This document shows, piece by piece, positions 33,220 to 58,226 of a stretch of DNA of 64,000 nucleotides; position 1 is the stretch's first letter; every line of letters starts with the position of its first letter. Origin of the DNA: Macrostomum hystrix (taxonomy: Eukaryota > Animalia > Platyhelminthes). Location: positions 6,634,001 to 6,698,000 of the forward strand of contig CATNEN010000003.1 in NCBI GenBank assembly GCA_950097015.1. Direction: 5' to 3'. The notes under the pieces are model-generated. The model was not told the DNA's origin, searched no databases, and saw only the letters and a program-made list of their open reading frames with translations. Both the position numbers and the translations under genes were made by a program.

Positions 33220-33978
33220 TCAGTCGAATGGTGACAGGCACTCGCACAGACCGCCTCTGCCTGAGGAGGTCATTGTGTCATCAGCCAGGGCGGAGTGGGA
33301 CCCACGGCCTCTGCACACCACATTGGCGTTCACTTGCGAGCTAGGCTCACCAATGCTCCAGAGGCTCCGGTCCAGGCTGATGTTGCACGCCAGCCAGTGC
33401 CAACCGTCGTGAGGCTCAGCACTGCCCGCAGTCTGGAAGCCACCCAGCCAGAAGGACATTCCACCACTGAAGTTTGTGTACAGAATGTCGACATGGGCCA
33501 TTTCAGTCGCATCCATTACGTCGGCCATGATCACCAGACCGCTCTCCGACTCGCAATTCTGTCGATGAACAGACCAGACTCCAGTCGCGAAATTTAACTT
33601 GTACTTCACTCCGCACAGGCCGTGTCCGTAGCCATTCGGACACAGCTGGCCAGCCTCGAGTCCCGGCTGCTGCTTCACAAACACCTGGCCTCTCCTGGAG
33701 CAGCTGCAGTCCCTCACCGACTTGCTGCACTTGTCGAACACGAACAGCTGACACGGACCGTCAGCCATGGTGAAGGCCTGGCAGCGCTGCTCCCTGCTGC
33801 ACAGCATTGAACACTCAAGGTGCGCCCAGCAGGTAGCATGAGTGTGAGTGTAGTCACTCCTAATGCACAAATATCCGAATGTCAAAGTATATTGTGTGCG
33901 GCAGCCTAAGCAATCAAAGGCATTAGACAATAAAGCAAGGTAAAATACGATTCTAGGAGCAGCAGAGAGCAGCAGCAT
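33220..33978 (-). CDS. secreted PAN/apple-like + C-type lectin protein, copy 1
   Basis: Signal peptide, ECSMLC...CQAF....C pattern, CTLD with FWLGG, WHW, GEPS, terminal LCEC; intronless 252 aa. Confidence 0.85.
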   Translation of the reverse strand: MLLLSAAPRIVFYLALLSNAFDCLGCRTQYTLTFGYLCIRSDYTHTHATCWAHLECSMLCSREQRCQAFTMADGPCQLFVFDKCSKSVRDCSCSRRGQVFVKQQPGLEAGQLCPNGYGHGLCGVKYKLNFATGVWSVHRQNCESESGLVIMADVMDATEMAHVDILYTNFSGGMSFWLGGFQTAGSAEPHDGWHWLACNISLDRSLWSIGEPSSQVNANVVCRGRGSHSALADDTMTSSGRGGLCECLSPFD

Positions 33979-34922
33979 GACTGAATAGAATAGACTCAGA
34001 AGTAGTCTAACGTCTGCTTCTCATTGCTGCTTAAGTATAGTGAGTATAGTGCTGTGTCAATGGCGCGCTTTCAACAATTTGCGACAGAAAACAATGCTTT
34101 GCAACCGCTTTTTTTTCAATTCCTGCAAGCTATTGGACCTCCCTTCCAGTAAAACGCGGGCATGGAATGTTGTCTAGGCAACTTAAAAAACAAAAAGCTC
34201 GATCCTCTTCATTTAACATTTTTAACCACATCGCTCAGAAGTAAAAATGAGGGAATTAAAAAGTTGCCGGCATTTGCTTCGCCTCGAATTTTTTTCTGTA
34301 ATTAGGCAGCAAGCCAAGTTGTGGCAATTCTGTTCGATGGAAGTTTGACAAAAAACTGAAAAATATTTTTGCTTTTAAAAACAAACCATGCATGTTGTGG
34401 GCGATTTCTAAAACTAAAGGAAAGAAAATCGATATGTTTCTTAGAAAGTGATCACACGGCCCATAAAAGTAATAAAAGTAAAAAGTAAAAAACAACTAAT
34501 TTCTATGTTTACGAAGCAACTTGGCCTCTTAACATTGCTTCATAACATCTGAGTGGCGAAAAGCATTGAATGTTTGCTTTAAATTTAGTGTCTATATTTC
34601 TACTCAGTGTTGATGTAAAACGCGAGGTTCGTTCCCCACTTTTAGTGTGTTACAGTCTCTCCTCTGTCAAGCTGTCTTCTCTTGTACTTCATGTAGCACG
34701 CCTGGCAGATAGTCTGTCGCACGTCACTCAAATCACTTCACCTGCTGGAATCTCTAAAAGTGGAGCCCCTTACTCTTGTCAACCTGTGCGAATGCGTCAG
34801 ACGATCTTTACAGCCGGAAGAGGGTCTATAAATACAATGATCAAATTCGGCAACAATCAAAGTTTTAACATTCAAAAGTAACTTTTCAAGCGATCTGCAG
34901 CAGCAACAAAACAAGTTGAAAA

Positions 34923-35150
34923 CAAGTTGATGTCAACATCAACGTGGACATCAGTAAGGTAATCGACTATGGCCTGAAGAAAATCGACGACGCGTTCTCT
35001 TGCTCAAAATACGATGGCGTGAAGGGAGCCGGATGCTGGCACAACAACCCCGGGAAACGGGACCTCCTGTGCAAGAGGTGCCCGTCAAGGCGCTGGACCT
35101 ACCGTCACAGCTTCCTTGGCGGCACATGCTACTGCTGCCACTGCCCTTGA
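34923..35150 (+). CDS. small Cys-rich (8 Cys) defensin-like peptide, start codon unresolved
   Basis: GC3-rich reading frame ending CYCCHCP-stop; TATA box (tataaata) at ~34827; no in-frame ATG. Confidence 0.45.
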   Translation, partial: QVDVNINVDISKVIDYGLKKIDDAFSCSKYDGVKGAGCWHNNPGKRDLLCKRCPSRRWTYRHSFLGGTCYCCHCP

Positions 35151-35684
35151 CCTCATTGTCCATGGACATGGATTCAACTCTGTAGGCGATGGAATTCCTG
35201 TTATTGATAAGTATAGCAAAAGCCTTACACGGCCAAATCATGGTGACACTGTATATTATTGGTTTTCAACTTCTATTTCAAACTAAGTAACTTCAATTTC
35301 GTCCGCGAGTACGGCCTGCCCAAGTTAGAGTAAATCAATTTCATAAAAAGTAACTTCTATTTCGTTAGCACTTTTTTCATCCTGCTTCAAACAATAATAT
35401 ACGCTCGTATAGTCAATGATGGGCCTGTACTTTCAATATATAGTTTTGACGTCTCAGCCAAGACACCAAGTGGGAGACAAACAACAAAAAGAGTTCGTAT
35501 TGTCGCTCCAAAAAGATCGGAGCTTCAAGAGCGGCTGGATGTGAAAGTGTCGGCGCTAGAAGTTGAAAACCAATATACTCAAAAGACAATTACAGCATTA
35601 ATACTCGTGTTGTGAATGTGTTGAATCACGGGTAAATCAGATACTTTGAATAATAACAATAATTATTATAAATTATTCATAATA

Positions 35685-37256
35685 TACTTTTTTGCGATTG
35701 AATTCGTCCAAACTGCAAAACCTTTCGTCCACAAATGCTTTCTTAATGGGAGCTAAATTTAGATCATACCATAGACAACCGTTTTCACGCAAAACGGTTC
35801 ATCCAGTTTGTAAAACATTTCGTCCCCTAGACTAGAGACCGAGTGTACTGTTCCTACCATAGTTAACACCCAATTGACAGTTCGCTTTTGCTACCACTAA
35901 AGCTACAGCAACGCATAGGCCTATCTTCCATTCCGAACCCGGCAAAACAGTCGAAGATGAACCGAGGCCCCTACCATCCAGTGTCAAACGAAGACCGCAG
36001 GCGATTAGCCTTGGCTGTTGAAGAAGGCCGCGATTGGAAACAACTGGCCGATATCCTTGGGATCAAGAGAAAGACAGCCAAAACGATTGTCGACACCTAC
36101 GTTCAAACCGGGCGCATTGAGAAGTTTCCATCAGCAGGTGGCCGTCCGAAGAAGAAACTGCAAGAGCAGCAGATTGAGTCAATCATCGAGTTCCTCGAGG
36201 CAAACCCGTCCGCGACATTACAAATGATGCGGAACCATCTGATGCAACTTGGCAATGAAGGTCAACTTCCTCATGTCTCAACCATAAGTCGAGCACTTGT
36301 CAAACAGCTGGTGACTTTGAAGCTGGCTAGGCAGATTACGTTTGATTGGAACGACCCAGTTGTGAAGGCGGCGAGATGTGAGTACGCACAGTGGATGATG
36401 AACGAAGGACACGACAGGAACCAGATTTTTCTCGATGAGTTCGGGCTGAACCTGTGGACGGCGAGAACTCAAGGATGGGCATATCGAGGCCAGCCTGCGG
36501 TGAGAACGGTATGTGGCCAGCGCGGACAAAACCTGACTCTCTGCTTGGCCATATCTCCGCAATGGGGACTTGTTCACTATGCGCTGATGGAAGGAGGTTT
36601 TCGAGCTCAAAATTTTGCAGACTTCTTAGTAGAGCTGGATGTCCTGGTGGAGGCTGAGTGGGTGGCGATCTTTGATGGGGCCCGCGCTCACCTTCAAGTC
36701 CCTGGACTTTCACCGCAACACAGCACCTATCAATTGCCACCGTACTCTCCGTATCTCAACCCAACTGAGCGCGCAGGGTCTTCCCTGAAGGCATCAGTGA
36801 AGAGGGCACTGTCAGTTCCCGCTATTCAGCACGAGCTCTCTAATCGGCAAGCTGCTGCTGCTGCGAACCTGACTCTGCATGCCTGGCGGATGCACATTTT
36901 GAAGAGAGAGGTCGAAGCTGCACTGCACGTGATTACACAGGAGAAGTGCCAGCAATGGACCAATCACACTGTGGGTTACTACGGCCGTTGTTTGGACTAC
37001 GAAGACATTTTGAACTAACATTCTAACAAGAGACACTGTTTTTGCTTTGTTCAATATCTCGTGATATCAAATAAAGTCGCTCCGTTTAGCTGTTAGCTGT
37101 TTGGACGAAGGGTTTAGACGAAATGTTTTACAAACTGGATGAACCGTTTTGCGTGAACACGGTTGTCTATGGTATGATCTAAATTTAGCTCCCATTAAGA
37201 AAGCGTTAGTGGACGAAAGGTTTTGCAGTTTGGACGAATTCAATCGCAAAAAGGTA
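35685..37256 (+). mobile_element. IS630-Tc1-mariner DNA transposon, full length
   Basis: ~139-bp near-perfect TIRs (35685-35823 / 37117-37256) flanked by TA; single transposase ORF. Confidence 0.92.
35957..37018 (+). CDS. IS630/Tc1-like DDE transposase
   Basis: N-terminal HTH motifs; IFLDEFG, IFDGARAH, LPPYSPYLNPTE catalytic motifs; uninterrupted ORF. Confidence 0.92.
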   Translation: MNRGPYHPVSNEDRRRLALAVEEGRDWKQLADILGIKRKTAKTIVDTYVQTGRIEKFPSAGGRPKKKLQEQQIESIIEFLEANPSATLQMMRNHLMQLGNEGQLPHVSTISRALVKQLVTLKLARQITFDWNDPVVKAARCEYAQWMMNEGHDRNQIFLDEFGLNLWTARTQGWAYRGQPAVRTVCGQRGQNLTLCLAISPQWGLVHYALMEGGFRAQNFADFLVELDVLVEAEWVAIFDGARAHLQVPGLSPQHSTYQLPPYSPYLNPTERAGSSLKASVKRALSVPAIQHELSNRQAAAAANLTLHAWRMHILKREVEAALHVITQEKCQQWTNHTVGYYGRCLDYEDILN

Positions 37257-37957
37257 TATTAAACCGGTAGCCACCAGCACGTGGAATGTCTAAGTGTTGC
37301 CCTGATTTTAAACTGCCCAGGAATGGCATCGCACAATGGGAGTGGATCGTTTATTAGATGATACAGTTGACATTGATGACAGTTGTCAAATACAGATTTT
37401 AACGAAAATTAAGAATCTTAAAATGAATCTTTTAAGAATCTTAAGCACCTTTTTAGATAGCAGGAAACTAAATAATCTATAAGACTTCGTGAGAGAAACA
37501 GCATGTGCCAATTTATAATCTACGATGGTAGCTCGCAACTATATTTAAAATTTCTTTAACTGCAATTCTCATCATCATCCCTTCTTGTAACGAAGAAAAT
37601 GTTTCTAAAATATGCTCTTAGAAATGCGAGAATCAGGCAAGCCAGTTGTTATACTTAACGGGGCCTGAAGCATATGAAACAGCTTCGAGCTATTCATTTG
37701 CATTCCTTGTCAAACGCGACGATTCGTGTAAATTGAGTCACTTTAGAGCCACGTTTCTACTCCTAAAATCCTTGAAAAAAGCAAGAAAACTTTGCAAATA
37801 TATCCCCTTTCATTCCACTGGAAAATTGCATACATCCAATTAGTGAAAAGCGCGCCTAAGGGCCTAAAAGTTTTGAGCTTTCAGCTTAAATAATATAGGT
37901 GCGTTTAATGAACCCGCTTTTTAGCAAATAAGTGGCACGCCCACGTCAAGTTTCAGA

Positions 37958-38718
37958 ATGCATGTAACGTTTCATTTCGTCGCGAAATGTCTCTTGACAT
38001 TTATCAACTATTATTCAACTAATCTGTCGAATCTGCTACAAATCGAGTCGAGTCGGCTACAAACAAATCACAGGCTTTCTTTGTGTTAAAAAAGAGTTCA
38101 TCCAAACCATTGGTACTCAAATGACTGGCCTGGAGTGCTCAATGATGTGCAGCAGCGACCAGCGCTGCCAGGCCTTCACCATGGCTGACGGTCCGTATCA
38201 CCTGTTCGTGTTCGACAAGTGCAGCAAGTCGGTGAGGGACTGCAGCTGCTCCAGGAGAGGCCAGGTGTTTGTGAAGCAGCAGCCGGGACTCGAGGCTGGC
38301 CAGCTGTGTCCGACTGGCTACGGACACGGCCTGTGCGGAGTGAAGTACAAGCTGTACAATGAATCAAGGACATGGGTTTCGAGCAGACAGAAGTGCGAGG
38401 CGGAGAATGGTCTGGTGATCATGGCTGATGTTACTGATTCCCAGGAAAAGAACCACATGGACTCTCTTCCCGGTAAATATGGAAGCGGCAAATCTTTTTG
38501 GTTGGGAGGCTTCCAGGGCCCTGGCAGCGAGGAGCCACGCGATGGCTGGTTCTGGGTCGCCTGCAACATCAGCGTGAACAGCTCGGTGTGGGGCAGTGGG
38601 GAGCCAAACAATGATGGCAAAGAGTGGCAAAGACGCAGACAGTTGCCATTGGTCTGAACGACGCGAACGAGAATTCCGACGACTTTGCTCTGTGCGAGTG
38701 TCTGTCGCCTTTCAATTG
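37958..38718 (+). pseudogene. PAN-like + C-type lectin copy 2, frameshifted
   Basis: ATG at 37958 is out of frame with GFLCVKKEFIQTIG..ECSMMC (frameshift near 38000); small deletions near 38610-38625 relative to the intact copy at 42064-42825. Confidence 0.8.
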
Positions 38719-41700
38719 ACGAGTATAGAACGAAAAAACTTTGTTTTTCTTCTGTGTTCGATTTCTTTAGAGTTTAGAGTTATTGATTATCTCTCCTTGA
38801 TTAATAATCATTGTGGTGATTTCATGAGTACTAAAACCAACAGCATACTGAAAAGTGTCGCATTTTGCAGTTATAGCGCGATAATTTATTGTCTAATTTG
38901 TCTAAATTGAAATTTCTGAAAAATTTCGCTAAAAATAATGTACTTTCTAGTTACTTCTCTAGTTACTTATCAGTCTCTTTTTTCCACGCCTTCATTTCGT
39001 TTTCTTTTTACCAACGGTGTTAGAGTGGTCCGTTGCCAGCGATCAAAGATCCTTTCCGACGAATGTATGGTAGGCGGGCACAGCAAAAGAAGATAGGATT
39101 AGGCTGGTCATTGTGAGCGAGATGATGGTGGACGCAGGCAGTGTGAATGGTGGTGAGGTGCTGGCATGCACTTCGATGCAAATGCAACGACACAAGATCT
39201 GCGACTGAAGAGTGAAGCTAGATTCGGGCGAATGTGGCGAATACTCACACAGGCGGTCGTGAGAGCACTCAAAGATTCATTCATCGAGATTGGTGAATCT
39301 CGATGGCCACTAGAAGGCGCGGTGCGTCTGAAGCCTGCGTACGAATGTGCAGTCAGTCCGTGGGAATGCTGTTACTCATTAAAAAGGTGAACTGAAGCAA
39401 TGCAGAGTCGAGTGTCTTTCTAAAAGACACATTTTTTCAAGTTCTTTGCTCGAAGCTACTAGGCTATACAACTCCTGGTTTTAGTAATTTTAGCACTCCT
39501 ACCATAGCCAAATAAGGCTTATGCATGCAGTGTTTTTTTAAATAAATTTTGCGGGCCTTTCCCCGTAGTATTTCTACTGTTAAACCAATTCTGTTAGGTA
39601 TCCGAAAAAGCTACCTCGAATTACTGTTCGTTTAGCTGCTAACAAGTACGAAATTCATTTTTTCTTGCCTGCAGCAAAGCAGACCTTAAGGTTCTGCAAC
39701 AGTCATTTTAGAGGGTCACTGTCGTGTTGGGCTCAGATTATGGTGTCCTCGAAGTGGGACCCAAATAAACTACTCAAAGTAGTATGAAGGTTTGTACGCA
39801 AAATTTAACATCATGCATGGCTTCATCTTTGAGTGTAGGATTGCTGCTTGCCCGATTATTTTCTGAATGGTACACACGTGGACAAATAGAGTGGACAAGT
39901 ACTTTTGTTGCTATGGGCACAGAATTGCCCCTCGAAGGGTGTAAATTGAACGACAAGCCCCTAAGCATTCTCTCCGCGGCCGCACCCCAAATAATGTGGC
40001 CTCGCCGCGGAATCGAGCTCTTTTGGCGATTGTGAAAAGATACCTGTGAATATCATTGGCATAAACATCTGTGCAGCCTACCTCAAGTCAGGCAATGCTG
40101 ATTGTTTATATCAACCGAACAAAAGTATTGATACTAAACGTTAAAGCAAATACGAGTATTTAATGCCTTTCGGCATTCGTAAGTATAGAGAAATATTACT
40201 AACAGTATCCCCCCAGACTTTTTTGCTGCACCCGAACGGAGCATTGCAAGCACACGAAACTCAAAATACGTGCCAAAACTTTTGTTGCGCATCTTCTGAA
40301 ATTGTTTCAAGAATCAAGTCGCCAGCTAGCGGAATGGGCGACTCCCGCCTCCCCGCTGCGTCCGTCGGACCGCCCTGCAAGTCGCCAGCTTTTCAGACCA
40401 TCGAGATATTCGAAGGTCAGATTTTTTTATAAGCGCTAGTGTAAATCATATGCCCCTATAAACGAATTAGCACTGCGCCTCAGTGCGGCATTGCCAGGCC
40501 TTCAAAACTTATCAGCATGTCACCCGAATGTGCCAATATCATCTCCGTCTTCTGTGGTTACCTAGATAGATAGATCCTGAATTTTTTTGGTATAAAAAAA
40601 GCTTTGTAGTCCTACTGTTAAGGGGCCTACTAGTTGCTTTATCAACATAAAAATTGAATGCCTCTATCGTGTGCAAATTCATGCAGTGCCATGCACAGAG
40701 CTATCTGTGTATTAGACATAAACTATAGGTTGGGTTAACAAAAAATGAAAAAGAACGATAAAAAATTACAAAAAAAATTGAAGCTGCAGTTACGAGAATG
40801 CGGTCCTTCTTTCTCCTAGACAATGTCTTCTTGAAAACAGCGCATCCTTGATTACGACTTGCTTCCCAAGAGCGACAATAAAAATACATCCAGAGAAAAA
40901 TAATTGTTGACGTGTTAGATTCTTCAGCTGCTGATGAACAACAATTAACGTTAATAATCTCGGGATTGAATCCAAATCTTATAATTTCATGAAGGTAGGC
41001 ATACGCTTTTCCGGAGCGTCATCTCAACAGCAGATAGATTTTTGGCATTGAGGTGGTCACTTCTCTCACTTCTTCTCTGGTCCCTTATAAAAGCGCAGTT
41101 TTCATCCAAGCAATATCAATGTTATCAGGCCTAGCTAAAAGGCGACAGACACTCACAGAAAGAAAAAAAGCTGTAGGAATTTTCATCAACGTCATTTAAT
41201 TTATTAGATAGGTAATAATACTTCCCAACCACATTCTCGAAGCCATTGTAGTTGTTCGGCTCATGATCAGCCCACAGCGAGTTGTCCACGCTGATGTTGC
41301 AGGAGGCCCACAACCAGCCTCCATATGGCTCCTGACTGCCCGGATTCTGGCGGCCTCCGAGCCAGAATGACGTTCTTCCAAAGCTGCTTCTGATAGCATC
41401 GATGTGGTTCATCTCAATAGCATCTTCTACATCGGCCATGATCAGCAGACCGCTCTCCGACTCGCACTTCTGCCTGCTCATCAGCCAGTTCATTGATTCA
41501 TTGTACAGCCTGTACTTCACTCCACAGAGGTCGTCTCTTCACTCTTCTCTTCACTCGTCTCTTCTCTTCACTCTTCAGTCGCAGATCTGGTGTCGTTGCA
41601 TTTGCATCGAATTGCATGCCAGCACCTCACCACCATTCACACTGCCTGCGTCCACCATCATCTCGCTCACAATGACCAGCCTAATCCTATCTTCTTTTGC

Positions 41701-42627
41701 TGTGCCCGCCTACCATACATTCGTCGGAAAGGATCTTTGATCGCTGGCAACGGACCACTCTAACACCGTTGGTAAAAAGAAAACGAAAAGAAGGCGTGGA
41801 AAAAAGAGACTGATAAGTAACTAGAGAAGTAGCTAGAAAGTACATTCTTTTTAGCAAAATTTTTCAGAAATTTCAATTTAGACAAATTAGACAATAAATT
41901 ATCGCGCTATAACTGCAAAATGCGACACTTTTCAGTATGCTGTTGGTTTTAGTACTCATGAAATCACCACAATGATTATTAATCAAGGAGAGATAATCAA
42001 TAACTCTAAACTCTAAAGAAATCGAACACAGAAGAAAAACAAAGTTTTTTCGTTCTATACTCGTCAATTGAAAGGCGACAGACACTCGCACAGAGCAAAG
42101 TCGTCGGAATTCTCGTTCGCGTCGTTCAGACCAATGGCAACTGTCTGCGTCTTTGCCACGGCGTTCTCTTTGCCATCATAGTTGTTTGGCTCCCCACTGC
42201 CCCACACCGAGCTGTTCACGCTGATGTTGCAGGCGACCCAGAACCAGCCATCGCGTGGCTCCACGCTGCCAGGGCCCTGGAAGCCTCCCAACCAAAAAGA
42301 TTTTCCGCTTCCATATTTACCGGGAAGAGAGTCCATGTGGTTCTTTTCCTGGGAATCAGTAACATCAGCCATGATCACCAGACCATTCTCCGCCTCGCAC
42401 TTCTGTCTGCTCGAAACCCATGTCCTTGATTCATTGTACAGCTTGTACTTCACTCCACACAGGTCGTCTCCGTAGCCAGTCGGACACAGCTGGCCAGCCT
42501 CGAGTCCCGGCTGCTGCTTCACAAACACCTGGCCTCTCCTGGAGCAGCTGCAGTCCCTCACCGACTTGCTGCACTTGTCGAACACGAACAGGTGACACGG
42601 ACCGTCAGCCATGGTGAAGGCCTGGCA
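38166..42627. repeat. ~1.05-kb inverted duplication (arms 38166-39217 and 41566-42627)
   Basis: Arms include the hub, the CTLD and ~500 bp of non-coding 3' flank; nearly identical in reverse complement. Confidence 0.92.
41131..41537 (-). pseudogene. orphan C-type lectin module (copy 3), 5'-truncated at the hub
   Basis: Begins at DDLCGVKY, open CTLD with FWLGG, EPNN, LND, FCEC; no signal peptide or N-module; abuts the duplicated arm. Confidence 0.8.
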
Positions 42628-42825
42628 ATGGTTCTTTTCGCTGCATAGCATGGCACACTCAGCGATGCTCCAGCAGTCCCTGATGACACGCCTGTACTTG
42701 TTTTTGATGCACAAGAGTCCATCGATTGGATTGAAATATCCACGTCGCGAACAAGTGCTTTTGCTTGACATTGCTGTGAGCAGCGCACCGAAGATAAGCA
42801 CCATGGACCAGAATCTGATGTTCAT
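42064..42825 (-). CDS. secreted PAN/apple-like + C-type lectin protein, copy 4 (probably chimeric)
   Basis: 253-aa intact ORF with signal peptide and EPN motif; CTLD near-identical to copy 2. Confidence 0.87.
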   Translation of the reverse strand: MNIRFWSMVLIFGALLTAMSSKSTCSRRGYFNPIDGLLCIKNKYRRVIRDCWSIAECAMLCSEKNHCQAFTMADGPCHLFVFDKCSKSVRDCSCSRRGQVFVKQQPGLEAGQLCPTGYGDDLCGVKYKLYNESRTWVSSRQKCEAENGLVIMADVTDSQEKNHMDSLPGKYGSGKSFWLGGFQGPGSVEPRDGWFWVACNISVNSSVWGSGEPNNYDGKENAVAKTQTVAIGLNDANENSDDFALCECLSPFN

Positions 42826-43099
42826 GACAGTCTAGTTTTTACTTTGGCAGAACTGCGGAAAACTGCGGAAAGGCGCTGGAGAGGTCACAATGAGCAGAGC
42901 ATCCATTTAAGTAATTCTTTATTATTCGCCCAACTCTCATTGGCTCCAGCCTGTTGAAAAATGGCTTTGAGCAAAACCAGTGCTGCAGTGCCATACAGTT
43001 AAAACGTCATTACATTCACTCTGGCTACGTCGTCTAGCTGGAAACTTTTCCCTTTCGCCAGGGATGCCACTTCTGACGATTGCTGAGTATATTTTCTAT

Positions 43100-43365
43100 T
43101 GGGAGGATGGCTGTCTGCAATGGCACACCATTTGGTGTCAGTAGACCTGCAGCCAGCAAGAGGCAATTCTGCTGATTACGCTGACACAGGTGTGTGCATC
43201 TACCCTAACTTTCTCATCGTCAGGTAGTATACATCAGGGGTTTGCCCTCAAGTACGTAAGTTGCACAAGTCCTGAAGCCTTCTATCCGTGACCTCGCTGC
43301 GTAATCGAGCTCTGGGACCTTGGTACGAGATGCAAACGTGTTAGACAGCTCTGCCACTTTGCCCT
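43100..43365 (-). mobile_element. SINE family B, degenerate copy
   Basis: similar to 11394-11681. Confidence 0.7.
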
Positions 43366-44997
43366 TCTCAGGTAAAGCTGCTCAATAGGTTGCTGAGAAT
43401 AATTTCAAACGACTAATGTCGTGTAGCTCGATTCTGTTACGTAAAATGAGTATAGTGATTTTAGAAGAATAAAACTTCACTAACAGTGTATAATAAATAC
43501 ACCCCATAGTACAAAAGTCATGGACTTCTAGAATTCTAAATTTTAGACACTAGATACAGGTGTTCTAGATGTCCTTAGTAAAACTAACTATATATTTACT
43601 ACACCGTTTGTTAAACGGTATTTTTCAGTGTCACAGTTCAGTGTATCAATCCTTTTAGTAAAATTCAGATTAAAAGCTATTGTCATAAATCAGCTATATT
43701 TAGCGTGGATGTTTCAACTAACAGGTAAGCTATGCGCATTATTCGTTGCGAGGTAAATGGAGACTGATGTATTTGCGCAAAAAAATTGGCCTTCATTTAA
43801 CGCAGAGTCTGCGTTGTTTGCCGAAAACACAATGCGAAATGCTGCAAGATGAACTGAAAGATGAAATCTGAGAAACATCGGTTTAGAATGCAAGCTTGGG
43901 ACTTTGAAATTATAAACCGGAAGAATTTTTCTGTTTTAAATTAGATTGTGTGGATTCACAATACAATCGCGAATACAATATTGGATGATAAAGCTATCAT
44001 TGGGAGACAGCTAGGGTGATTTGCAGAGTGGTCTAACGTGTTCGCTTCAATCTTAACTGTCAGCTTTCGCAAAACATCTAAATAAATTCAGACTTCGTGA
44101 GAGAAACGGCATGTGCAAATTCATAATCTACGAGGTACTAGAGTAGCTCGAAAAAAATATTTTAAAATCCTTTAACTTCAATCATCGTGATCATACTTCC
44201 TTGCAACGAATAAAGTTTTATAAAAAATGTTCTTAGAAAAGCGAGAATCATGCAAGCAAGGTGGGTGGTTACTCTCTCACACCAAGATCCCTGAGCTCGA
44301 TTCCGCGGCGAGACCACATTTCATTTGGGGAAAACGTGTTCTTTTTACTGTTAATGACCTTGTTTGTTTGTTAAATAAGACAGGTGGTTTCTTCTAAAGT
44401 CGGCCTTGACTAATGAAACGGTGCGAAGTATAATTAAGTAATAATCAGGGTTTTCTAAAGTACGTTTTGAACACCCAGAACAGTAATGCACCATTTTTAA
44501 TGGCCTAATCACAAATATACAAATGATGCTTGAATATCACTTGTTTTATAAATATATCGCGACGTCATATTTCGATGTCAAGTCAAGAGCATAGTCAAAC
44601 AGTTAGCTTGAGCAATAGCTAGACTACAGCATGTCACGAGGTCTATGCTTATTATAAGTTCATTTTAAGAAACTCGCAACATGCAGTGTGCACATAAAGG
44701 CCAGAAATTTTCTAGAGGCTGTTTGTCCGAGATAAGCGCTTGATAACAGTGGGTTGGGGGTCGGTTGTAGTCATACCCGAATATGACTACATTCCGTTCT
44801 AAACCCGCCTCGAAGCGAACCTCTGCACTTTGATTTCGTACCGTACAAGTTTTATCACGCGCCAAATGCATGCTGGCTCCTGCAACCTGTATAAAAGGCA
44901 CACGAAACAGCACCGCTCCGAACTCTACGCTAAACTCTACCCTGATTTCTTTCGACTTTAGTTTTCATAGCCTTCTAAAACTAAGGCAACAGGAAGA

Positions 44998-45957
44998 ATG
45001 GTTCGTCAAAGCGTTCAGATTGCACTGGTGGCTTTGACCAGCCTAATGCTGCTGCTGACGCTGGTATTCAACTACCTGAGCACATCGGAACTCGGTTACA
45101 AACTGGGCCTGTTCTCAAACGACAGCAGAGTGCCGTGGACCCAGAGAGGCGACCTCATTGCTAGCAAACTGACCCCACCCGGCTGGGCATTCATCATCTG
45201 GGCGGTGATCTACACATACCAGGCCGCCATGTTGGCCTACTGCTGGAGCCTGCTGTTCCGCAAGAGCTACAGCGGCGAACCCCTGTGCTGCATTCCCGGC
45301 CTTCTACCTGTCGGCTTTCTCATCTCCCACTCAGTTAGCAGCGGCTTCAACATCGCCTGGATCTTTGTCACTGACAAGGTTCAGTACGACAAGAACAATT
45401 TGATTCCGCAGACTGTCATCCTGTTCCTGCTGGCCATCTCACTGTGGGTGAGCCTGATCTTCTCCCTCAACCAGCTGGCCGCCAATAGGAATCGACTGCG
45501 TCGAGAGGGACTGCAGCGGGAATACTGGCTCGTGATTGCCCTGGTGCAGAACGCTTGTGGCTTCTACGTTGGCTGGACCTGCATCGCCAGCTTCCTAAAC
45601 TTGGACATCGCCATCATCAACCTGAAAGGCTATGCCCCAGTCAGCAGCGCTCTGCTCTGCCTGTGCCAATTCTGCGGCCTTCTGGGCGCCTACCTGACGG
45701 CCGACTTCTCGTTCCTGGATACCTACACTCGCTTCTTCTTTGGTCCCTACCTGACCATCCTATGGGCATTGTTCGGTGTTGTTGCCGGAAACTACCAGGC
45801 CGGATCGCCGGCCTCCGACATGAGCGTGGAACTGCTAGCTGTGCAAATCGCCTTCCTGCTGGTGAAGATCGCTCTGGCCATCTTTCGGCAGAAGAGGAGC
45901 CCGCTGCCAGACAACACCCACAGCGGACGCATCACGGACAAGGAGGTGGAGATGTGA
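44998..45957 (+). CDS. multi-pass membrane protein, TspO/MBR-related
   Basis: 319 aa, about 7-8 hydrophobic helices, TPPGWAFIIWAVIY motif, GC3-rich codons, TATA box at ~44890. Confidence 0.8.
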   Translation: MVRQSVQIALVALTSLMLLLTLVFNYLSTSELGYKLGLFSNDSRVPWTQRGDLIASKLTPPGWAFIIWAVIYTYQAAMLAYCWSLLFRKSYSGEPLCCIPGLLPVGFLISHSVSSGFNIAWIFVTDKVQYDKNNLIPQTVILFLLAISLWVSLIFSLNQLAANRNRLRREGLQREYWLVIALVQNACGFYVGWTCIASFLNLDIAIINLKGYAPVSSALLCLCQFCGLLGAYLTADFSFLDTYTRFFFGPYLTILWALFGVVAGNYQAGSPASDMSVELLAVQIAFLLVKIALAIFRQKRSPLPDNTHSGRITDKEVEM

Positions 45958-46362
45958 AAAATTTGGCACGTTCGAAGCGGCAGCGAGTGGAACAGTTACA
46001 CATTTAAATTCACGGACCTGTTTTGCAATCGCTAGATTTGTTATTTTTTGACATACTACTCTTGATTCTACTTTGTTATTCTGCAAGAACCCTTTAAAAA
46101 GAAAAGACAATCTGAAAAAGTACAGACTGTGATATAACAAGACAATAAGTTTTTCATATTGTTTTTTAAATAAATTCACTTCCTAATTACTATCTTGTAC
46201 AATCATGTAATTAGTAATTCAGAAGATGCTTTGATGTTTAACTTTCTACGAACAATATCTGCTTTAGTCTAAGTTTATTAACTCTTAAGTTATATACAAG
46301 CTGGATATCGAGGCGGGCATGCAGGGGACACTTAATGATCGGAGGTTTGATTCACGATCCCA

Positions 46363-46445
46363 GCATTAGCTGGGATAATTGAAGGTGGGTGTGGCGTCCC
46401 CCCCCGTCCACGGACTGAACAGCCGTACGCAGCCTTCAGATACCA
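46363..46445 (+). mobile_element. SINE family C fragment (empty site for the hAT insertion at 59573)
   Basis: matches 59540-59572 + 59934-59980 with a single ggtgtggc. Confidence 0.65.
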
Positions 46446-47427
46446 ACCTCCAAGGCACAGCGAGACCCGTGAGGTTTTGCTGGAAGGTTTTGTCTTTGAA
46501 CTCATCGATCGAACGTCAGACATGCAGCTCCTGCTGTGTTTAGCAATTACGAGCTAGAGCTGGTTTCTAGAGAAAATTCTAAACTTGGGGCCCTAATAAA
46601 TGAAATTGGCCTTGGATTCGAACTCAGGGCGTTCGGCGCAAGAGTTCAGGCGAGGCACCGCTCCACTAACACACTCAACTTTCTATTATTCTACCTGATA
46701 TAGATTAGAAATTTGACCCCAGAAAACCTTAGACCATTGTAAGGTGGTTCGATTTAGCCTGGTGCACGATTCTGTGCCAGTGAACTGATAAGGAGCCTCT
46801 CTAAAGGAAATGTACTATACTGGCCGAAGATAACAAAATTACCGTTCCCATAAGGCTTGCTAAATGTCTATCTCTTTAAATTTATGTTTGCCCGCATAGT
46901 TCAAAGTTCTAGGGCCAAGTCAATAGCTATGTGTTAATTGAAGCAACTACCCAGTTTTTCAGAGCTCTTGGCTTTTGAGTCCGATAGTGATTAGTTTGAT
47001 CTGGTCGGAAAAGATTGAAATCTACAAAAAAACACTTTATCAAGGTCAGTGGGCGAAGCGCCAACGGTGAAGTTTGTCGTACGTTGAAGACACGTTTTTT
47101 AGAAAAATTCCTCTACTAATACAAAAATCTTACATTTCTAGAACTTTTCTCGATTTCTCGATTCCGTTGTAACTGATCCATCTTTTCAAGGTGTTACGAG
47201 TACAATGCAAACCGTACTAATAGATTGTTGTTGCTTCAAGCAGAATTGGCCCGGGACATTGCGCTCTGGGCCGCATTGAGATTGGAGATTGAAAAGCTTC
47301 TGATAGGCTGCTACCAGGCATAGCCTATGAGCTCGTGAAGTGATTTGCAGGCAATTAATATTTTTACATCGGCGCAATCAACAATCAACACGACGGAACT
47401 GTCTAGACAAAATATCCTAGCTGTTCA

Positions 47428-48189
47428 ATGATGTTTAAAGTGAAGTTGTTTTTTATGATTTCCATATGTTTAGGAGCGAGTGTAATTGTATTGTGTGATT
47501 TCAACTGCCGAATCACATTTCACTCCCAACTGGGCTACCTGTGCATCAAAAGTGAGTTCACTAGAACCATTGACTACTTTAGGACTCACCTTGAGTGCTC
47601 AATGTTGTGCAGCAGGGAGCAGCGCTGCCAGGCCTTCACCATGGCTGACGGTCCGTGTCAGATGTTCGTGTTCGACAAGTGCAGCAAGTCGGTGAGGGAC
47701 TGCAGCTGCTCCAGGAGAGGCCAGGTGTTTGTGAAGCAGCAGCCGGGACTCGAGGCTGGCCAGCTGTGTCCGACTCGCTACGGAGACGACCTGTGCGGAG
47801 TGAAGTACACGTTTTTCTATGAAACGAGTAATTGGCTAGTTCATCAGAATATTTGCGAGTCGGAGAGCGGTCTGGTGATCATGGCTGACGTAGAGAATGC
47901 AACTGAGATGGAGCATGTGGATGCACTGTACACCAAGTACAACACCGGGACTGGAGTATGGCTTGGTGGGCGCCAGATACGGGACAGCGTGGAACCGGCT
48001 GGTGGCTGGTACTGGGTCGCTTGCAACATCAGCATCGACAGCTCGCTGTGCTCGACTGGTGAGCCAAACGACACTCCACATGATGAGAACGCCATTCTCA
48101 GAGGCGTGACTCGGAGTCAGCTGACGGATGCTTCTGTGCTGAGGACTGGCCTGAATGGCCTGTGCGAGTGTCTATCCCCGTTCAACTGA
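47428..48189 (+). CDS. secreted PAN/apple-like + C-type lectin protein, copy 5
   Basis: 253-aa intact ORF, signal peptide, shared hub, VWLGG, GEPND, LCEC. Confidence 0.87.
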   Translation: MMFKVKLFFMISICLGASVIVLCDFNCRITFHSQLGYLCIKSEFTRTIDYFRTHLECSMLCSREQRCQAFTMADGPCQMFVFDKCSKSVRDCSCSRRGQVFVKQQPGLEAGQLCPTRYGDDLCGVKYTFFYETSNWLVHQNICESESGLVIMADVENATEMEHVDALYTKYNTGTGVWLGGRQIRDSVEPAGGWYWVACNISIDSSLCSTGEPNDTPHDENAILRGVTRSQLTDASVLRTGLNGLCECLSPFN

Positions 48190-48742: not shown

Positions 48743-49240
48743 AAGTTTAGGTCGTGAGTCCGTTAGCAAAGTTTAAACAGTAATCATTTTTTAACGTTTT
48801 TATTTTGTATACAAAAGGACATCTGAAGGCTGTATAGGTAATGCGCCACCAAACATAGAAGCAAGGCAAATATCATTTATCTCGTAGAGCATGAAAATTT
48901 AATGTGTCTAGCTTCTATGTACACTAGGCCAATAGCTGCATGTTGATTAAAAATACTATTGATCACGAGTCAGTTGTGACGGTGGACAAAATTAAACAGA
49001 AACTCTTAAAAAATGGAAAGTTAACGCGTCTGCCGCTCGCACCAAGGTCCCTGAGCTCGATTCCGCGGCGAGACCAAGGAACAGTGAGAGTGTACACTGC
49101 TTGACGATTAGAAAGTCAGGGCAGATGTACACAACCTAGCAATCTAGAACATCAGTGGCACATCATTTGGTGACTCTAAACCCACAGCCAGCGAGGAGGC
49201 AATTCTGCCCATTTCGCTGACTCCTGAGCACACACTCACA

Positions 49241-49954
49241 AATCTCACCTGTCATCTCACTCGAATCTCACCTGTCATCTCACTCGAATATCACCTGTCA
49301 TCTCACCTGTCATCTCACTCGAATCTCACCTGTCATCTCACTCGAATCTCACCTGTCATCTCACTCGAATCTCACCTGTCATCTCACTCGAATCTCAACT
49401 GTCCTCTCACTCGAATCTCACCTGTCATCTCACTCGAATCTCACCTGTCCTCTCACTCGAATCTCAACTGTCATCTCACTCGAATCTCACCCGTCATCTC
49501 ACTCGAATCTCACCTGTCCTCTCACTCGAATCTCACCTGTCCTCTCACTCGAATCTCAACTGTCATCTCACTCGAATCTCACCCGTCATCTCACTCGAAT
49601 CTCACCTGTCATCTCACTCGAATCTCACCCGTCATCTCACTCGAATCTCACCTGTCATCTCACTCGAATCTCACCCGTCATCTCACTCGAATCTCACCCG
49701 TCATTTCACTCGAATCTCACCTGTCATCTCACTCGAATCTCACCTGTCCTCTCACTCGAATCTCAACTGTAATCTCACTCGAATCTCACCTGTCATCTCA
49801 CTCCAATCTCACCTGTCATCTCACTCCAATCTCACCCGTCATCTCACTCGAATCTCACCCGTCATCTCACTCGAATCTCACCTGTCATCTCACTCGAATC
49901 TCACCCGTCATCTCACTCGAATCTCACCTGTCATTTCACTCGAATCTCACCTGT
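49241..49954. repeat. 23-bp minisatellite
   Basis: aatctcacctgtcatctcactcg units. Confidence 0.95.
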
Positions 49955-50439
49955 CGTATCCCCTAATCATACCTAACTAAAAATGCGTCACAAAATTCAA
50001 AAAGTGTCATTTTTATCGCAATGTTTCTGTCTAAATCTCCAGTCTAAAGTGCTAATTTAACCGCAAAACAAAACTAGTAAGGCATCACTGCTGTTGGTAG
50101 ACTGCAAACCGATTGGTAGCAGAAGAAACAGCGGGGGCAGACACAGGAAAGGGGACTAAAAGAACTGCCAAGAAAAGGGAAAAATCTTTAGACTAAATTT
50201 CCCCATTTCGCTTCCAATTCCTCTCTAACTCCCGTTAGCATTTTCCTGAGCTAGTGGGCTACCTAACCAAGGTTGGGTGACAGCACGTGGTTGCATTCTC
50301 ACGGGTTCTTATAGAAATTTAGCTCACATACCAGCTCAACTGCTCAACCTAATAATATGTTCAGTTTGGGTAGAGGCACATTTGCTTCTCTTCCAAGCTG
50401 ACACAAAGTTATGTCAATTACCTAATTTTCTGTCTTCCA

Positions 50440-52137
50440 TCTCATGATCTCACACCAACTCATTTCTCATGATCTCACACCAACTCATTTCTCATGATCT
50501 CACACCAACTCATTTCTCATGATCTCACACCAACTCATTTCTCATGATCTCACACCAACTCATTTGTCGTGGATCTCACACCAACTCATTTGTCATGATC
50601 TCACACCAACTCATTTCTCATGATCTCACACCAACTCATTTGTCATGATCTCAAACCAGCTCGTTTCTCATGATCTCACACCAACTCATTTCTCATGATC
50701 TCACACCAACTCATTTGTCGTGGATCTCACACCAACTCATTTGTCATGATCTCACACCAACTCATTTCTCATGATCTCACACCAACTCATTTGTCATGAT
50801 CTCACACCAACTCATTTCTCATGGATCTCACACCAACTCATTTCTCATGATCTCACACCAACTCATTTCTCATGGATCTCACAGCAACTCATTTCTCATG
50901 ATCTCACACCAACTCATTTCTCATGATCGCACACCAACTCATTTCTCATGATCTCACACCAACTCATTTCTCATGATCTCACACCAACTCATTTCTCATG
51001 ATCTCACACCAACTCATTTCTCATGATCTCACACCAACTCATTTCTCATGATCTCACACCAACTCATTTCTCATGATCTCACACCAACTCATTTCTCATG
51101 ATCTCACACCAACTCATTTCTCATGATCTCACACCAACTCATTTCTCATGATCTCACACCAACTCATTTCTCATGATCTCACACCAACTCATTTCTCATG
51201 ATCTCACACCAACTCATTTGTCATGATCTCAAACCAGCTCGTTTCTCATGATCTCACACCAACTCATTTCTCATGATCTCACACCAACTCATTTGTCGTG
51301 GATCTCACAGCAACTCATTTCTCATGATCTCACACCAACTCATTTGTCATGATCTCACACCAACTCATTTCTCATGGATCTCACACCAACTCATTTCTCA
51401 TGATCTCACACCAACTCATTTCTCATGGATCTCACAGCAACCCATTTCTCATGATCTCACACCAACTCATTTCTCATGATCTCACACCAACTCATTTCTC
51501 ATGATCGCACACCAACTCATTTCTCATGATCTCACACCAACTCATTTCTCATGATCTCACACCAACTCATTTCTCATGATCTCACACCAACTCATTTCTC
51601 ATGATCTCACACCAACTCATTTCTCATGATCTCACACCAACTCATTTCTCATGATCTCACACCAACTCATTTCTCATGATCTCACACCAACTCATTTCTC
51701 ATGATCTCACACCAACTCATTTCTCATGATCGCACACCAACTCATTTCTCATGATCTCACACCAACTCATTTCTCATGATCTCACACCAACTCATTTCTC
51801 ATGATCTCACACCAACTCATTTCTCATGATCTCACACCAACTCATTTCTCATGATCTCACACCAACTCATTTCTCATGATCTCACACCAACTCATTTCTC
51901 ATGATCTCACACCAACTCATTTCTCATGATCTCACACCAACTCATTTCTCATGATCTCACACCAACTCATTTCTCATGATCTCACACCAACTCATTTCTC
52001 ATGATCTCACACCAACTCATTTCTCATGATCTCACACCAACTCATTTCTCATGATCTCACACCAACTCATTTCTCATGATCTCACACCAACTCATTTCTC
52101 ATGATCTCACACCAACTCATTTCTCATGATCTCACAT
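50440..52137. repeat. 25-bp minisatellite, ~1.7 kb
   Basis: ctcatgatctcacaccaactcattt units. Confidence 0.97.
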
Positions 52138-55271: not shown

Positions 55272-58226
55272 TTACACATCCGTCTCCATGCCAACTGGGA
55301 AGGCGATCGTCTCGAGAAGTTTCGCCACAGACGGCGAGAGGGACATTGTTGACGACGGTTGCGCCAGAGCCTGTCGCGGTGGCGGCAGCGGCGGCGGCTG
55401 AGACGACGATGTGAATTGAAATCCGGCTGAGCAGAAATCAATGTCACTACCGCTAGAGGACCGATGCTGCTGACTCAGCTGATGCTGCTGCTGCTGCTGT
55501 TGCTGTCGCTGTTGATGTTGCTTCTGCTGTCGTTTAAGCCTTTCAAACCGACGCCTCTCAGGCAGCGGCAGTGTATTCGCCATCCTGTGACTGTCCATTG
55601 AGCAGGCCGAGTTCCTGAGGATCAGCTGACCGCAGAGCCGCAGACGATCTGGCCTGAATCCGGTCATCCCGCTCGCCTCATCGTCGATGCTGTCTTCTTC
55701 GATTTCGCGACTCGACGGAGCGAAGTCAGCCGAGCAGACGTAGCGTGGCAGGTCGTAGGGCGAGGAGTGCACATTGCCGCCAATGCCGACCACGGAGGCG
55801 GGCACCAGGTCGGGCGGGATTCCGCAGCAGCGCGTTGGAAACAGGGGACGCCTATCGGTGCTGGCGCTAGTTGGATGCACCCCGGTTAGCAGCGGCGATT
55901 TTCTAGCGAAATAACAGGCGGGATTCGCTCCAGAGCTTGACGTTGCGCCGGAACCGCAGGATGTCGATGTGCCGACGGGACCGACCGCCAATGCCGTCGC
56001 CGATGCTGACGCTGTCGTCATTGCTGAACAGGTTGCGGTGGCACTGCACCGGCCACCAGAGCGACCCTGAGATCTGCCGATGCTGCCACTTTCTCCGCGA
56101 AGAAAGAAAAACTCAGCGAAGCGTCGAGAGTTGGCCACAGCCACAGCCACTGTGGCCACCGCGAGAGCGACCACAACAGCTCCGGAAGCGACGCCGACAA
56201 CCAGTAGCACGGAGGCGCCAACAAGGTCACCGCGACTGCTTCCGCTACTGCTACTTCCGCTTCCGCTGCCGGGGCCGTCGTCTGCTCCGCTGCCGCCTCG
56301 AGGACGCCGATCGCGGAAGAGAATAATAGCATCATTGTTGGTACCGTTGTCAGCCGCTGCAGCAGCAGAAGCAGCCGACGAGACAGCCATGCGTGGACAA
56401 TTTTGTCGACGAAAATCCATCAGAGGCAGATTGCGACATCGCAGATGGCGATATGTAACCGCAGGCAGGGCCGCAATAACTTGACGCCATCGAGCTGGTT
56501 CGAACAGTTCGCAGTCGCAGGCTAGCTGAGCGTCGCCCAGAACAATTCGGACGCCTCGTCTGGCTCCGACGTCGAGCAGAGCATCTGGCAAGTTGGTGAG
56601 GCCGCAGTCGGTGAGGTTCAGCAGGCGCAGACTAGTGAAACGGTGCAGGCCGGATAGTTTGGAGGCTCGACTGAGCCGGTTGCCGCTGAGGTCGAGTTCG
56701 TCAACCAGATCAGCTCGCGTCGGTGCCTCCAAGTCGGTCAAGTCCTGGATTCTGTTTCCGGCTAGGAGCAGGCGGTAGCGTACGCGGTGGACACCAGCCG
56801 GCAGTTGGCGGGGCAGAGACGTCAGCCGGGAGGCGCCGGTGCAGTCTACGGTGAGGCTAGAATCGGCGACTCTCTCGATGCAGCGGCAGCCTGTGGTTCG
56901 AGAGAGAAAGAGAGCTGACTGTATAATAAATTTTAGTCATCAAGGAACAGTAAACTCCAAAAAAAAATTTGAATCTTCAGCGTCACCTGACGGGCAGTCG
57001 ATCCGATGATCGCACTGAAGCTCTTCACCCTTCAAAGTCATCAAAGTGGGCGCCTTTCCAAGCCCAACGACACCTTCGCACGGCATGTCCAGCCAAGCGT
57101 CGATAGCTAGAGCGTTCCTTCGAGAAAACAACCCCGCCGAATTTGGTCCGTGGTTCGAGTCGCCAGCCGTAGCGGTCGAGGCGGTAGTGAAGTATCGCCA
57201 CGCATGCAAGACCCTGCAGTCGCAGGCTATTGTGCTGCCTCTGTTGTCCACGTGCAGGAATGGTTGAAACGCGTCACGGTAGAGCTTCAGCCGGGCTACC
57301 ACGGCGTCTGGAGCGCCATCCAGTGAGGGCATCGGAAGGCCCCAGAGGCGACTCACGCCGAACGCCTCCGAACCGAGCTGGTTGTGGGTGAGTCGCACAG
57401 TGAGGCGTAGATAATATGAGGCGTCTGTGGAGCGACGAAATTCGCGTTCCCGTTCAACCGCGCGAATGTCCTCCAGGGTCCAACGCCAACGAAGCATATT
57501 AGTGAGCAATGTGACCTGGTTATGGCTCAGGTTCACCTCCTGTAGGCTAGCTAATCTCACAAGCGAAACGTCGACCTGCTTGATTCGACACCGAGCTGCG
57601 TTGAGCGTTTTCAACCGGCTCCGTCTGGGGCTTGGCAAATGCGTCACGAAGATCGACTCAAGCATAGCATTCTCAGAGACGTCAACCAGCTCCAACGTGT
57701 CCAGATAGAGCAGCTGTGTCAGGTCCAGCTGGGTCAGCCGGTTGCCTCTCAGGCTGAGGCTGCGCAGGCGTCGATGGCAAACCGAGGGCAGCGGTGGCTC
57801 CAGCGGAAAGAAAAACTCGGCGACGCCATTCTCGGACAGGTCGATCGTCGTCAGGTTGACGAATCGGCACAAGTCGCGCAGCGGAACTGAACGCAATCCG
57901 GCTCTAGTCATGCTGAAGCTGGCCACCCGACCTTCAGCGGCAGCCGGCAGTTGGCAGCCGTCGTTGCTAACGCCGCCGCCACCGGACGCGTGACTGACTG
58001 CTCCAGCAGCTCCAGATGTCGTCGGAATGTTCTCCGGCTCGCAGCGACGAACCGTCAGAGCCACATTCGGCGTCAAGTCGTCTCCGTCGACGCCGCTTGG
58101 TTCCAGGATCACGTGACGACAGGACCGCCAGGCGCAGCTGCTACCGTCGACTAGAACGGTGCCAGTTGGTGTGATGGACAGCAGGAGAAGTGCCAACGGC
58201 ATCAGTGCTTGAAGCACCGTCGGCAT
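55272..58226 (-). CDS. LRR type-I transmembrane receptor (Toll-like ectodomain, no TIR), 2 exons, ~952 aa
   Basis: Exons 56987-58226 and 55272-56890 (96-bp GT-AG intron, in frame: CPSG|CRC); signal peptide, LxxLxLxxN repeats, ACDC LRRCT, CPxxCxC LRRNT, second LRR block + LRRCT, TM helix, low-complexity cytoplasmic tail. Confidence 0.88.

Follow-up and report, generated by a model that had tools for sequence, protein, structure and literature searches.

A near-identical 184-nt coding hub in PAN/C-type-lectin-like genes of the flatworm Macrostomum hystrix: part-gene concerted evolution with re-assortment of the flanking modules, probably by ectopic gene conversion

The Plasmodium var genes and the genes of the major histocompatibility complex (MHC), in which conversion is exon-limited, are mosaic families whose conserved blocks guide ectopic recombination. 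The bacterial shufflon of R64 (Rci/sfx) is organized differently: one expressed gene keeps a constant N-terminal part, and segments bounded by 19-bp sites are flipped within a clone by a dedicated tyrosine recombinase. Fossum et al. (2011; PMC3210942) term concerted evolution of part of a gene merohomogenization, with KLRC/NKG2, KLRA/Ly49, KLRB and PIR as examples. For the fibrinogen-related proteins (FREPs) of the snail Biomphalaria, diversification by gene conversion and point mutation has been reported (review PMC12074976). Here we analyze 64,000 nt of the Macrostomum hystrix genome (assembly GCA_950097015.1, contig CATNEN010000003.1, hereafter C3, positions 6634001-6698000; the window). 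It contains members of what is probably a large, intronless, Macrostomum-specific gene family, which encodes small and probably secreted proteins with a PAN/apple-like domain followed by a C-type lectin-like domain (CTLD). Between the variable N-terminal half (N-module) and the CTLD, the genes share an almost invariant DNA segment of 184 nt, the hub.

The pattern is one of part-gene concerted evolution combined with block-guided mosaicism; this mode of evolution is known already, and the family showing it is new. Its best explanation, which we consider probable, is ectopic conversion of the hub together with purifying selection, with occasional overrun of the tracts re-assorting the flanking modules. 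The merohomogenized families are alike in that clustered paralogues were homogenized after speciation by conversion over part of the coding sequence, the rest being old and different, and several of them are also C-type lectin-like. The leukocyte receptors differ in homogenizing the ligand-binding domain while the signalling part stays distinct, and their multi-exon genes come in pairs or small groups. In M. hystrix, the homogenized segment is a 184-nt domain junction, it is common to at least 43 genes without introns, and it is the putative ligand-binding parts that remain different. With var and MHC genes the family shares short conserved blocks between variable segments, exchange at those blocks and conflict between the trees of neighboring segments, but it has one dominant block instead of many and no known role in antigenic variation or antigen presentation. 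FREPs, too, constitute an invertebrate secreted lectin-type family, and conversion among numerous germline copies is given as the source of their diversity. For them, diversification within an individual is claimed, whereas in M. hystrix only germline exchange on an evolutionary scale is shown; the domains differ as well, immunoglobulin superfamily plus fibrinogen in FREPs and PAN plus CTLD in Macrostomum. The resemblance to a shufflon lies in repeats of both orientations placed between alternative coding segments, where exchange would stay in frame. Unlike a shufflon, the family consists of whole genes with a 184-nt coding repeat, no recombinase is found in the window, and the exchanges are duplicative.

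The four hubs of the window (Table 1) are invariant at 176 of 184 positions, with pairwise differences at 3-6 positions and a longest identical run of 111 nt. The preliminary description of this DNA, which reported an identical block of about 110 bp within a near-identical hub of about 180 bp, is borne out in this respect. A 107-nt core matches all four local copies with 0 mismatches. Over the 100 nt on each side of the hubs, ungapped identity is 48-71%, the exception being the sequence downstream of the recently duplicated pair B38 and C42.

This hub is a property of the family across the whole genome and no device special to the window. A search of 220,453,370 bases in 42 contigs finds the core with at most three mismatches in at least 43 places, 19 of them exact, with 21 on the forward and 22 on the reverse strand; the reversed-pattern control gives 0 matches. 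Contig C3 harbors 41 of the 43 places, within the interval 3.9-11.8 Mb. A first, broader look had returned 145 candidate places, and the hub-centered loci gave 30 intact genes (244-263 amino acids, aa) and 13 broken or odd copies. Across the at least 43 genes, the main hub is approximately 98.7% identical (approximately 1.3% difference), and all hubs share one reading frame. The 5' edge is very sharp, since 311 of 406 gene pairs end within a single 15-nt bin.

The identity extends to synonymous sites. Among the 30 intact genes, third-codon-position identity is 0.90-0.99 over approximately 60 hub codons vs 0.3-0.5 in the flanks, and the low flank values hold even at conserved amino acids; in one five-codon bin of the CTLD, amino-acid identity is 82% and third-position identity only 43%. 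By the method of Nei and Gojobori (NG86), medians of the proportion of synonymous differences (pS) lie at 0.05 (hub), 0.60 (CTLD) and 0.73 (N-module), so that the hub is far below its flanks and not comparable with them. With Jukes-Cantor correction, hub divergence is at least 24 times lower than that of the flanks. The earlier observation of frozen third positions holds, both in pS and in the third-position scan over the 30 genes. The proportion of nonsynonymous differences (pN) in the hub is 0.021, giving a dN/dS ratio of approximately 0.4. Of the 56 variable hub sites, 31 are singletons. Intact genes differ from the hub consensus at a mean of 2.37 positions (30 genes) and broken or odd copies at 2.27 (11 copies), indicating that conservation of the hub is independent of whether the gene is intact. 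The GC content at third codon positions (GC3) is 0.80 in the hub vs 0.60 and 0.69 in the flanks, and variants away from the consensus comprise 65 GC-to-AT and 17 AT-to-GC changes. Both the raised GC3 and the excess of GC-to-AT variants are as expected with GC-biased conversion.

Separate trees were built for the N-module, the hub and the CTLD. That of the hub is a star in which no branch has support, and those of the N-module and the CTLD conflict with each other. The N-modules of L010, L012 and L018 are approximately 99% identical, yet the clade that they form is rejected on the CTLD data by the approximately unbiased (AU) test (log-likelihood difference 136, p-AU 2e-5), as is the N-module clade of L013, L026 and L033 (p-AU 1e-48). 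In the reciprocal comparison, three of four CTLD clades are rejected on the N-module data (p-AU 3e-4, 2e-3 and 6e-3), whereas for the remaining one p-AU is 0.108 and not significant. The hub is thus a real site of exchange, and the proposal that it is a recurrent site of recombination or conversion with re-assortment of the flanking modules is supported by these conflicting trees. Switches in similarity occur at the hub in 27 gene pairs and at a second and a third conserved island in 7 and 16 pairs, respectively. Because the two smaller islands, both in the CTLD, also carry switches, the hub is the largest point of exchange and not a unique joint. Gene pairs with at least 90% identity account for 10% of all pairs immediately 3' of the hub, for 6% farther along, for 1.7% at the end of the gene and for 2.2% in the N-module. 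This decay of similarity away from the hub fits hub-anchored tracts of variable length.

Comparison with Macrostomum lignano bears on the relative ages of hub and modules. A fully degenerate back-translation of a nine-residue hub motif locates 58 places in the M. hystrix genome, at least 50 of them with the very same codons. Approximately 20 of these places fall outside the main hub class; they are distributed over contigs C1, C9, C11 and C38 and two sites on C3 (4.55 and 5.27 Mb), each cluster carrying its own version of the hub. The class at 5.27 Mb is a mosaic, in which the 5' two-thirds equal the main hub and the 3' third is approximately 20% different. Further family clusters are situated at 21.87-21.90 Mb of C1, 0.49-0.66 Mb of C9 and 5.27 Mb of C3 (loci L057-L073), and for at least two of them M. 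lignano orthologues are clear. In the CTLD tree, L072 (C9) pairs with M. lignano P0005 with 99% support in the Shimodaira-Hasegawa-like approximate likelihood ratio test (SH-aLRT), L058 and L059 (C1) are placed with P0003, and the main-hub genes L012 and L034 join genes of other hub classes in a 95* clade. With the other hub classes added, monophyly of the CTLD copies of this genome is rejected on protein data (p-AU 0.0012), and so is a single CTLD clade of main-hub genes (p-AU 0.012); in an earlier, smaller test, the proposition that CTLD types predate the species split gave p=0.21, and it became significant only after the other classes were added. Since the copies of this genome are not monophyletic and the main-hub genes do not form one clade, CTLD lineages are older than the split from M. 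lignano, though this is tempered by the mosaic nature of the CTLDs. In a by-eye reading, approximately 11 of 62 residues distinguish the hub of L072 from its orthologue in M. lignano P0005, which shows that the hub does not stay fixed over this span. Old CTLD lineages joined to hubs that differ by approximately 1.3% are the signature that homogenization after divergence would leave. In the M. lignano proteins, too, no part is more conserved than the hub stretch.

How the hub stays uniform while its flanks are re-assorted would be accounted for by repeated ectopic gene conversion, that is, non-reciprocal repair copying between paralogues, mostly within one chromosome, with purifying selection on the scaffold acting alongside. 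The flanks, at approximately 45-66% identity, may be too diverged for heteroduplex, so that tracts would normally stop at the hub edges and the island would maintain itself. Occasionally, a tract started in the hub would continue through the smaller CTLD islands, or upstream, and replace the neighboring module, and such overruns would produce mosaic genes with new combinations of N-module and CTLD. We infer a molecular route through double-strand-break repair, with synthesis-dependent strand annealing or a related pathway at work; we take the conversion to be a germline process on an evolutionary time scale, whose selected outcome would be a diverse lectin repertoire.

The preliminary description favored another route, in which crossovers between inverted hubs would flip the intervening DNA in the manner of a shufflon. 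In its unprogrammed form, homologous crossovers between hubs would be the main path of re-assortment, as inversions between inverted neighbors and unequal crossovers between direct ones, and conversion would merely keep the hub uniform; we regard this as unlikely. Plausible substrates are present, since inverted 184-nt repeats that are 97-98% identical lie 4-5 kb apart, and some tracts do enter the flanking DNA, reaching approximately 560 nt past the stop codon in B38/C42, approximately 250 nt in L038/L035 and approximately 680 nt upstream in L010/L012. Near-identical CTLDs nevertheless occur in different genes (98.9% for B38 and C42, 97.7% for L014 and L031). Reciprocal inversion makes no duplicates, and the presence of near-identical modules in several contexts therefore makes the exchange look non-reciprocal. 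Homology between L014 and L031 extends from the 5' edge of the hub to 8 nt beyond the stop codon, and that of L005 with L013 and with L009 ends 60-70 nt after it. Tract ends 8-70 nt past the stop are not those of a single crossover, which would carry the 3' flank too. Alternating orientation, taken in the preliminary description as a trait of these copies, is not significant for the family: neighbors within 12 kb are opposite in 11 cases and the same in 6 (p=0.33). Such an excess of inverted neighbors would be in line with a crossover route, and one of the three alternations in the window is a recent inverted duplication. Finally, in the paralogous head-to-head clusters c and d (at 8.11 and 8.23 Mb of C3), the DNA that separates the two inverted hubs is collinear, with 95-97% identity; no hub-bounded inversion is seen between paralogous clusters, this pair being the only informative comparison. 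Duplicative modules, tract ends and collinear clusters together oppose the inversion model.

A programmed version, in which dedicated machinery would swap modules at the hub within an animal's lifetime to yield combinatorial receptors, is very improbable. The common frame would keep any hub-to-hub exchange in frame, the hub edges are sharp, and the variable part of the CTLD takes in the sugar-site loops. As the preliminary description also noted, no recombinase is evident; the open reading frames (ORFs) of the window hold no site-specific recombinase, and their only DDE enzyme is that of a multi-copy Tc1/mariner element, the other ORFs being unrelated. The ORFs of A33, C42 and D47 are complete, running from a start codon through hub and CTLD to a stop codon of their own, and the same is true of the 30 intact genes genome-wide; dead copies conserve the hub equally. 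A shufflon proper is ruled against by the lack of a dedicated recombinase and of a single expressed gene joined to alternative segments. Breakpoints also fall at the other conserved islands, and germline conversion would fully explain the pattern. A related idea, that the hub or an inner core of approximately 50-90 nt is a dedicated joint for exchanging lectin cassettes, whether as a frequent, regulated germline process or somatically, we hold to be distinctly improbable; if true, it would amount to receptor diversification by conversion in a flatworm, with a logic like that of chicken immunoglobulin gene conversion or of the claimed snail FREP system. It is also improbable, though to a lesser degree, that nucleotide-level selection on an RNA element, a small-RNA target or a DNA-binding site froze the hub with no copying needed. 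The sharp edges would suit such selection, as would the inner core, which keeps its codons across contigs in classes older than the species split. A structured RNA is made unlikely by an ordinary fold on either strand of the D47 hub (z +0.91 and -0.86) and by the absence of an Rfam match for the hub. Pseudogenes and fragments retain the hub as well as intact genes do, the star-like hub tree is not a short-branched copy of the gene tree, hub classes are cluster-specific, with one mosaic, and the hub dN/dS is not near zero. An artefact, in which short-read polishing or assembly collapse homogenized a multi-copy stretch, is scarcely credible. The published assembly was made with canu from PacBio reads of pooled worms of the inbred line SR1 and polished with Arrow and Pilon (PMC10468722), and where repeats are shorter than the reach of a read pair, Pilon can propagate the majority base from one to another and remove rare variants. 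Polishing cannot, however, make 98.7% identity out of synonymous-saturated sequence, the singleton variants and cluster-specific hub classes survive, and the block edges coincide with the protein stretch most conserved in the M. lignano relatives.

Several observations weigh against conversion with purifying selection as the full account. The sharp 5' edge is explained only if selection or mismatch rejection in the flanks is added. Homogenization after speciation rests on protein trees and AU tests, for which the LG+G4 model is somewhat liberal, and Pilon polishing could slightly exaggerate the identity of the hub. Where the amino acid is the same, the other hub classes have a codon identity of 0.85-0.99 over the 5' half of the hub, compared with a background of 0.46-0.50 in the N-module and 0.61-0.66 in the CTLD. 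The inner core of approximately 50-90 nt thus keeps the same codons in classes that lie on other contigs and predate the species split, which needs either low-rate conversion between chromosomes or some nucleotide-level constraint.

The window itself holds five family members: three intact genes, one pseudogene and one fragment (Table 1). The A33 product has a hydrophobic N-terminus followed by the PAN/apple-like domain and the CTLD. The preliminary description listed four full-length lectin copies, which is correct for A33, C42 and D47 but not for B38. This copy lacks a start codon and the signal part, has several stops upstream and retains only a remnant of an N-module of its own type; its hub is intact, and its CTLD, a copy of that of C42, is broken at the end by deletions of 3 and 7 nt. 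The same description's count of three CTLD types among the four copies stands, one type being common to B38 and C42. The fifth copy, E41, was missing from that list. It retains just approximately 35 nt of the 3' end of the hub, with the truncation point inside this segment, and upstream of it on the minus strand a short purine-rich simple repeat (41521-41620) replaces the N-module and most of the hub. The two arms of the inverted duplication are 98.9% identical (12 substitutions and 2 indels in 1052 nt). The outer edge of the left arm is exactly the 5' edge of the B38 hub (38166), and upstream of the hub B38 and C42 are unrelated. A33 and B38 alone share a private two-base patch of hub variants, even though the CTLD of B38 is that of C42.

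Table 1. Positions of family members, hubs and associated elements in the window (numbered from its first nucleotide)
Feature	Positions	Strand	Description
Copy A33	33220..33978	-	Intact single-exon gene, 252 aa; ORF, family alignment, PAN and CTLD profile matches
Hub of A33	33600..33783	-	184 nt
Tc1/mariner element	35680-37261	+	Between A33 and B38; 145-nt terminal inverted repeats; open 376-codon frame with DDE_3 and HTH domains
Copy B38	37998..38657	+	Pseudogene; positions are those of the open frame
Hub of B38	38166..38349	+	184 nt
Left arm of young inverted duplication or conversion tract	38166..39217	+	Hub, CTLD and approximately 560 nt of 3' flank
Copy E41	41131..41520	-	CTLD-only fragment; Pfam Lectin_C E 0.0044, below threshold
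Right arm of inverted duplication	41566..42627	-	C42 hub, CTLD and 3' flank
Copy C42	42064..42825	-	Intact gene, 253 aa; protein used for the structure model
Hub of C42	42444..42627	-	184 nt
Copy D47	47428..48189	+	Intact gene, 253 aa; ORF and family alignment
Hub of D47	47626..47809	+	184 nt

For neither domain do the encoded proteins reach the Pfam threshold. All of their close relatives are M. lignano proteins, named in UniProt as C-type lectin or Apple domain-containing, and a literature search returned nothing specific on this PAN plus CTLD family in Macrostomum. The sole match to Pfam Lectin_C in the window is the E41 fragment (18.2 bits vs a cut-off of 22.6), and 0 of 30 family members score at E 0.01 or better; PAN_3 and PAN_4 give matches below threshold only (E 0.03-0.05). 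Against solved structures, the family profile matches C-type lectins at E 3e-4 to 1e-3, including mosGCTL-1 (E 3e-4), and the PAN domain of Eimeria MIC5 (1hky) at E 5e-4. The AlphaFold2 (AF2) model of C42, computed from an alignment with M. lignano and more distant relatives, has a mean predicted local distance difference test (pLDDT) score of 92.2; an earlier run from the paralogues of this genome alone was poor (mean pLDDT 53). In a Foldseek search of the PDB, the C-terminal half of this model retrieves the fourth carbohydrate-recognition domain (CRD4) of the mannose receptor, codakine, langerin and DC-SIGN (E 4e-10 to 4e-8), with per-target template modeling (TM) scores of 0.74-0.85, and 0.64-0.67 for two oligomeric chains. 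The C-terminal half of C42 is accordingly predicted to have the CTLD fold. For residues 31-103, the predicted secondary structure fits the beta-beta-alpha-beta-beta-beta topology of PAN domains. The hub encodes residues 67-128 of the model, which reach from the final three strands of the PAN domain over the linker into the first strands of the CTLD; in the predicted structure, it is a junction or scaffold joining two domains and itself no protein domain. At the sugar site, the 30 genes carry the tripeptides EPN (14), EPD (6), DPN (3), QPD (1) and others (6). The WND position retains its Asp, but its Asn is found in only two of the 30; C42 has EPN and LND. With the tripeptide variable and the WND-type Asn mostly missing, "lectin-like" is the safe term, and sugar binding is unproven.

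Other elements of the window were also inspected. The Tc1/mariner element has at least 17 near-full-length copies in the genome, on many contigs and with 94-100% identity; several are approximately 100% identical, which points to probable recent activity. The element is an ordinary transposon without link to the hub. An open frame of 319 aa between C42 and D47 (44998-45957, plus strand) has, by eye, the look of a multi-pass membrane protein and no Pfam match. Downstream of D47 lie tandem arrays with periods of 23 nt (49139-50105) and 25 nt (50395-51750), in a region of strongly negative GC skew (-0.25 to -0.57). Two pairs of short dispersed repeats, of 41 nt (44276-44316 and 49036-49076) and 44 nt (37482-37525 and 44090-44133), show 93-95% identity. 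The first pair ends in a tRNA-like GATTCC...CCA stretch and may be a fragment of an element resembling a short interspersed nuclear element (SINE); a tRNA-derived element was considered for it and rejected, as ARAGORN finds no tRNA within the window. Towards the ends of the window are exon-sized ORFs of a UDP-glucose:glycoprotein glucosyltransferase (788-13435, minus strand; Glyco_transf_24, UDP-g_GGTase and Thioredoxin_12) and the ORF of a leucine-rich-repeat protein (56940-58226, minus strand), the remaining ORFs being otherwise unknowns.

For Macrostomum, one practical consequence is a warning for annotation and assembly, as reads and transcripts of the family will cross-map in the hub. The locus provides no new mechanism for generating diversity unless read-level data show ongoing or somatic exchange. 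What it does present is an unusually clean island of homology, in which 184 nt that are approximately 98.7% identical span a domain junction in at least 43 otherwise synonymous-saturated genes. It is a natural system for studying tract lengths, homology thresholds and the GC bias of ectopic conversion in a lophotrochozoan. In biological terms, the family would represent a lineage-specific lectin repertoire of a free-living flatworm, built from old modules that were re-assorted by conversion.

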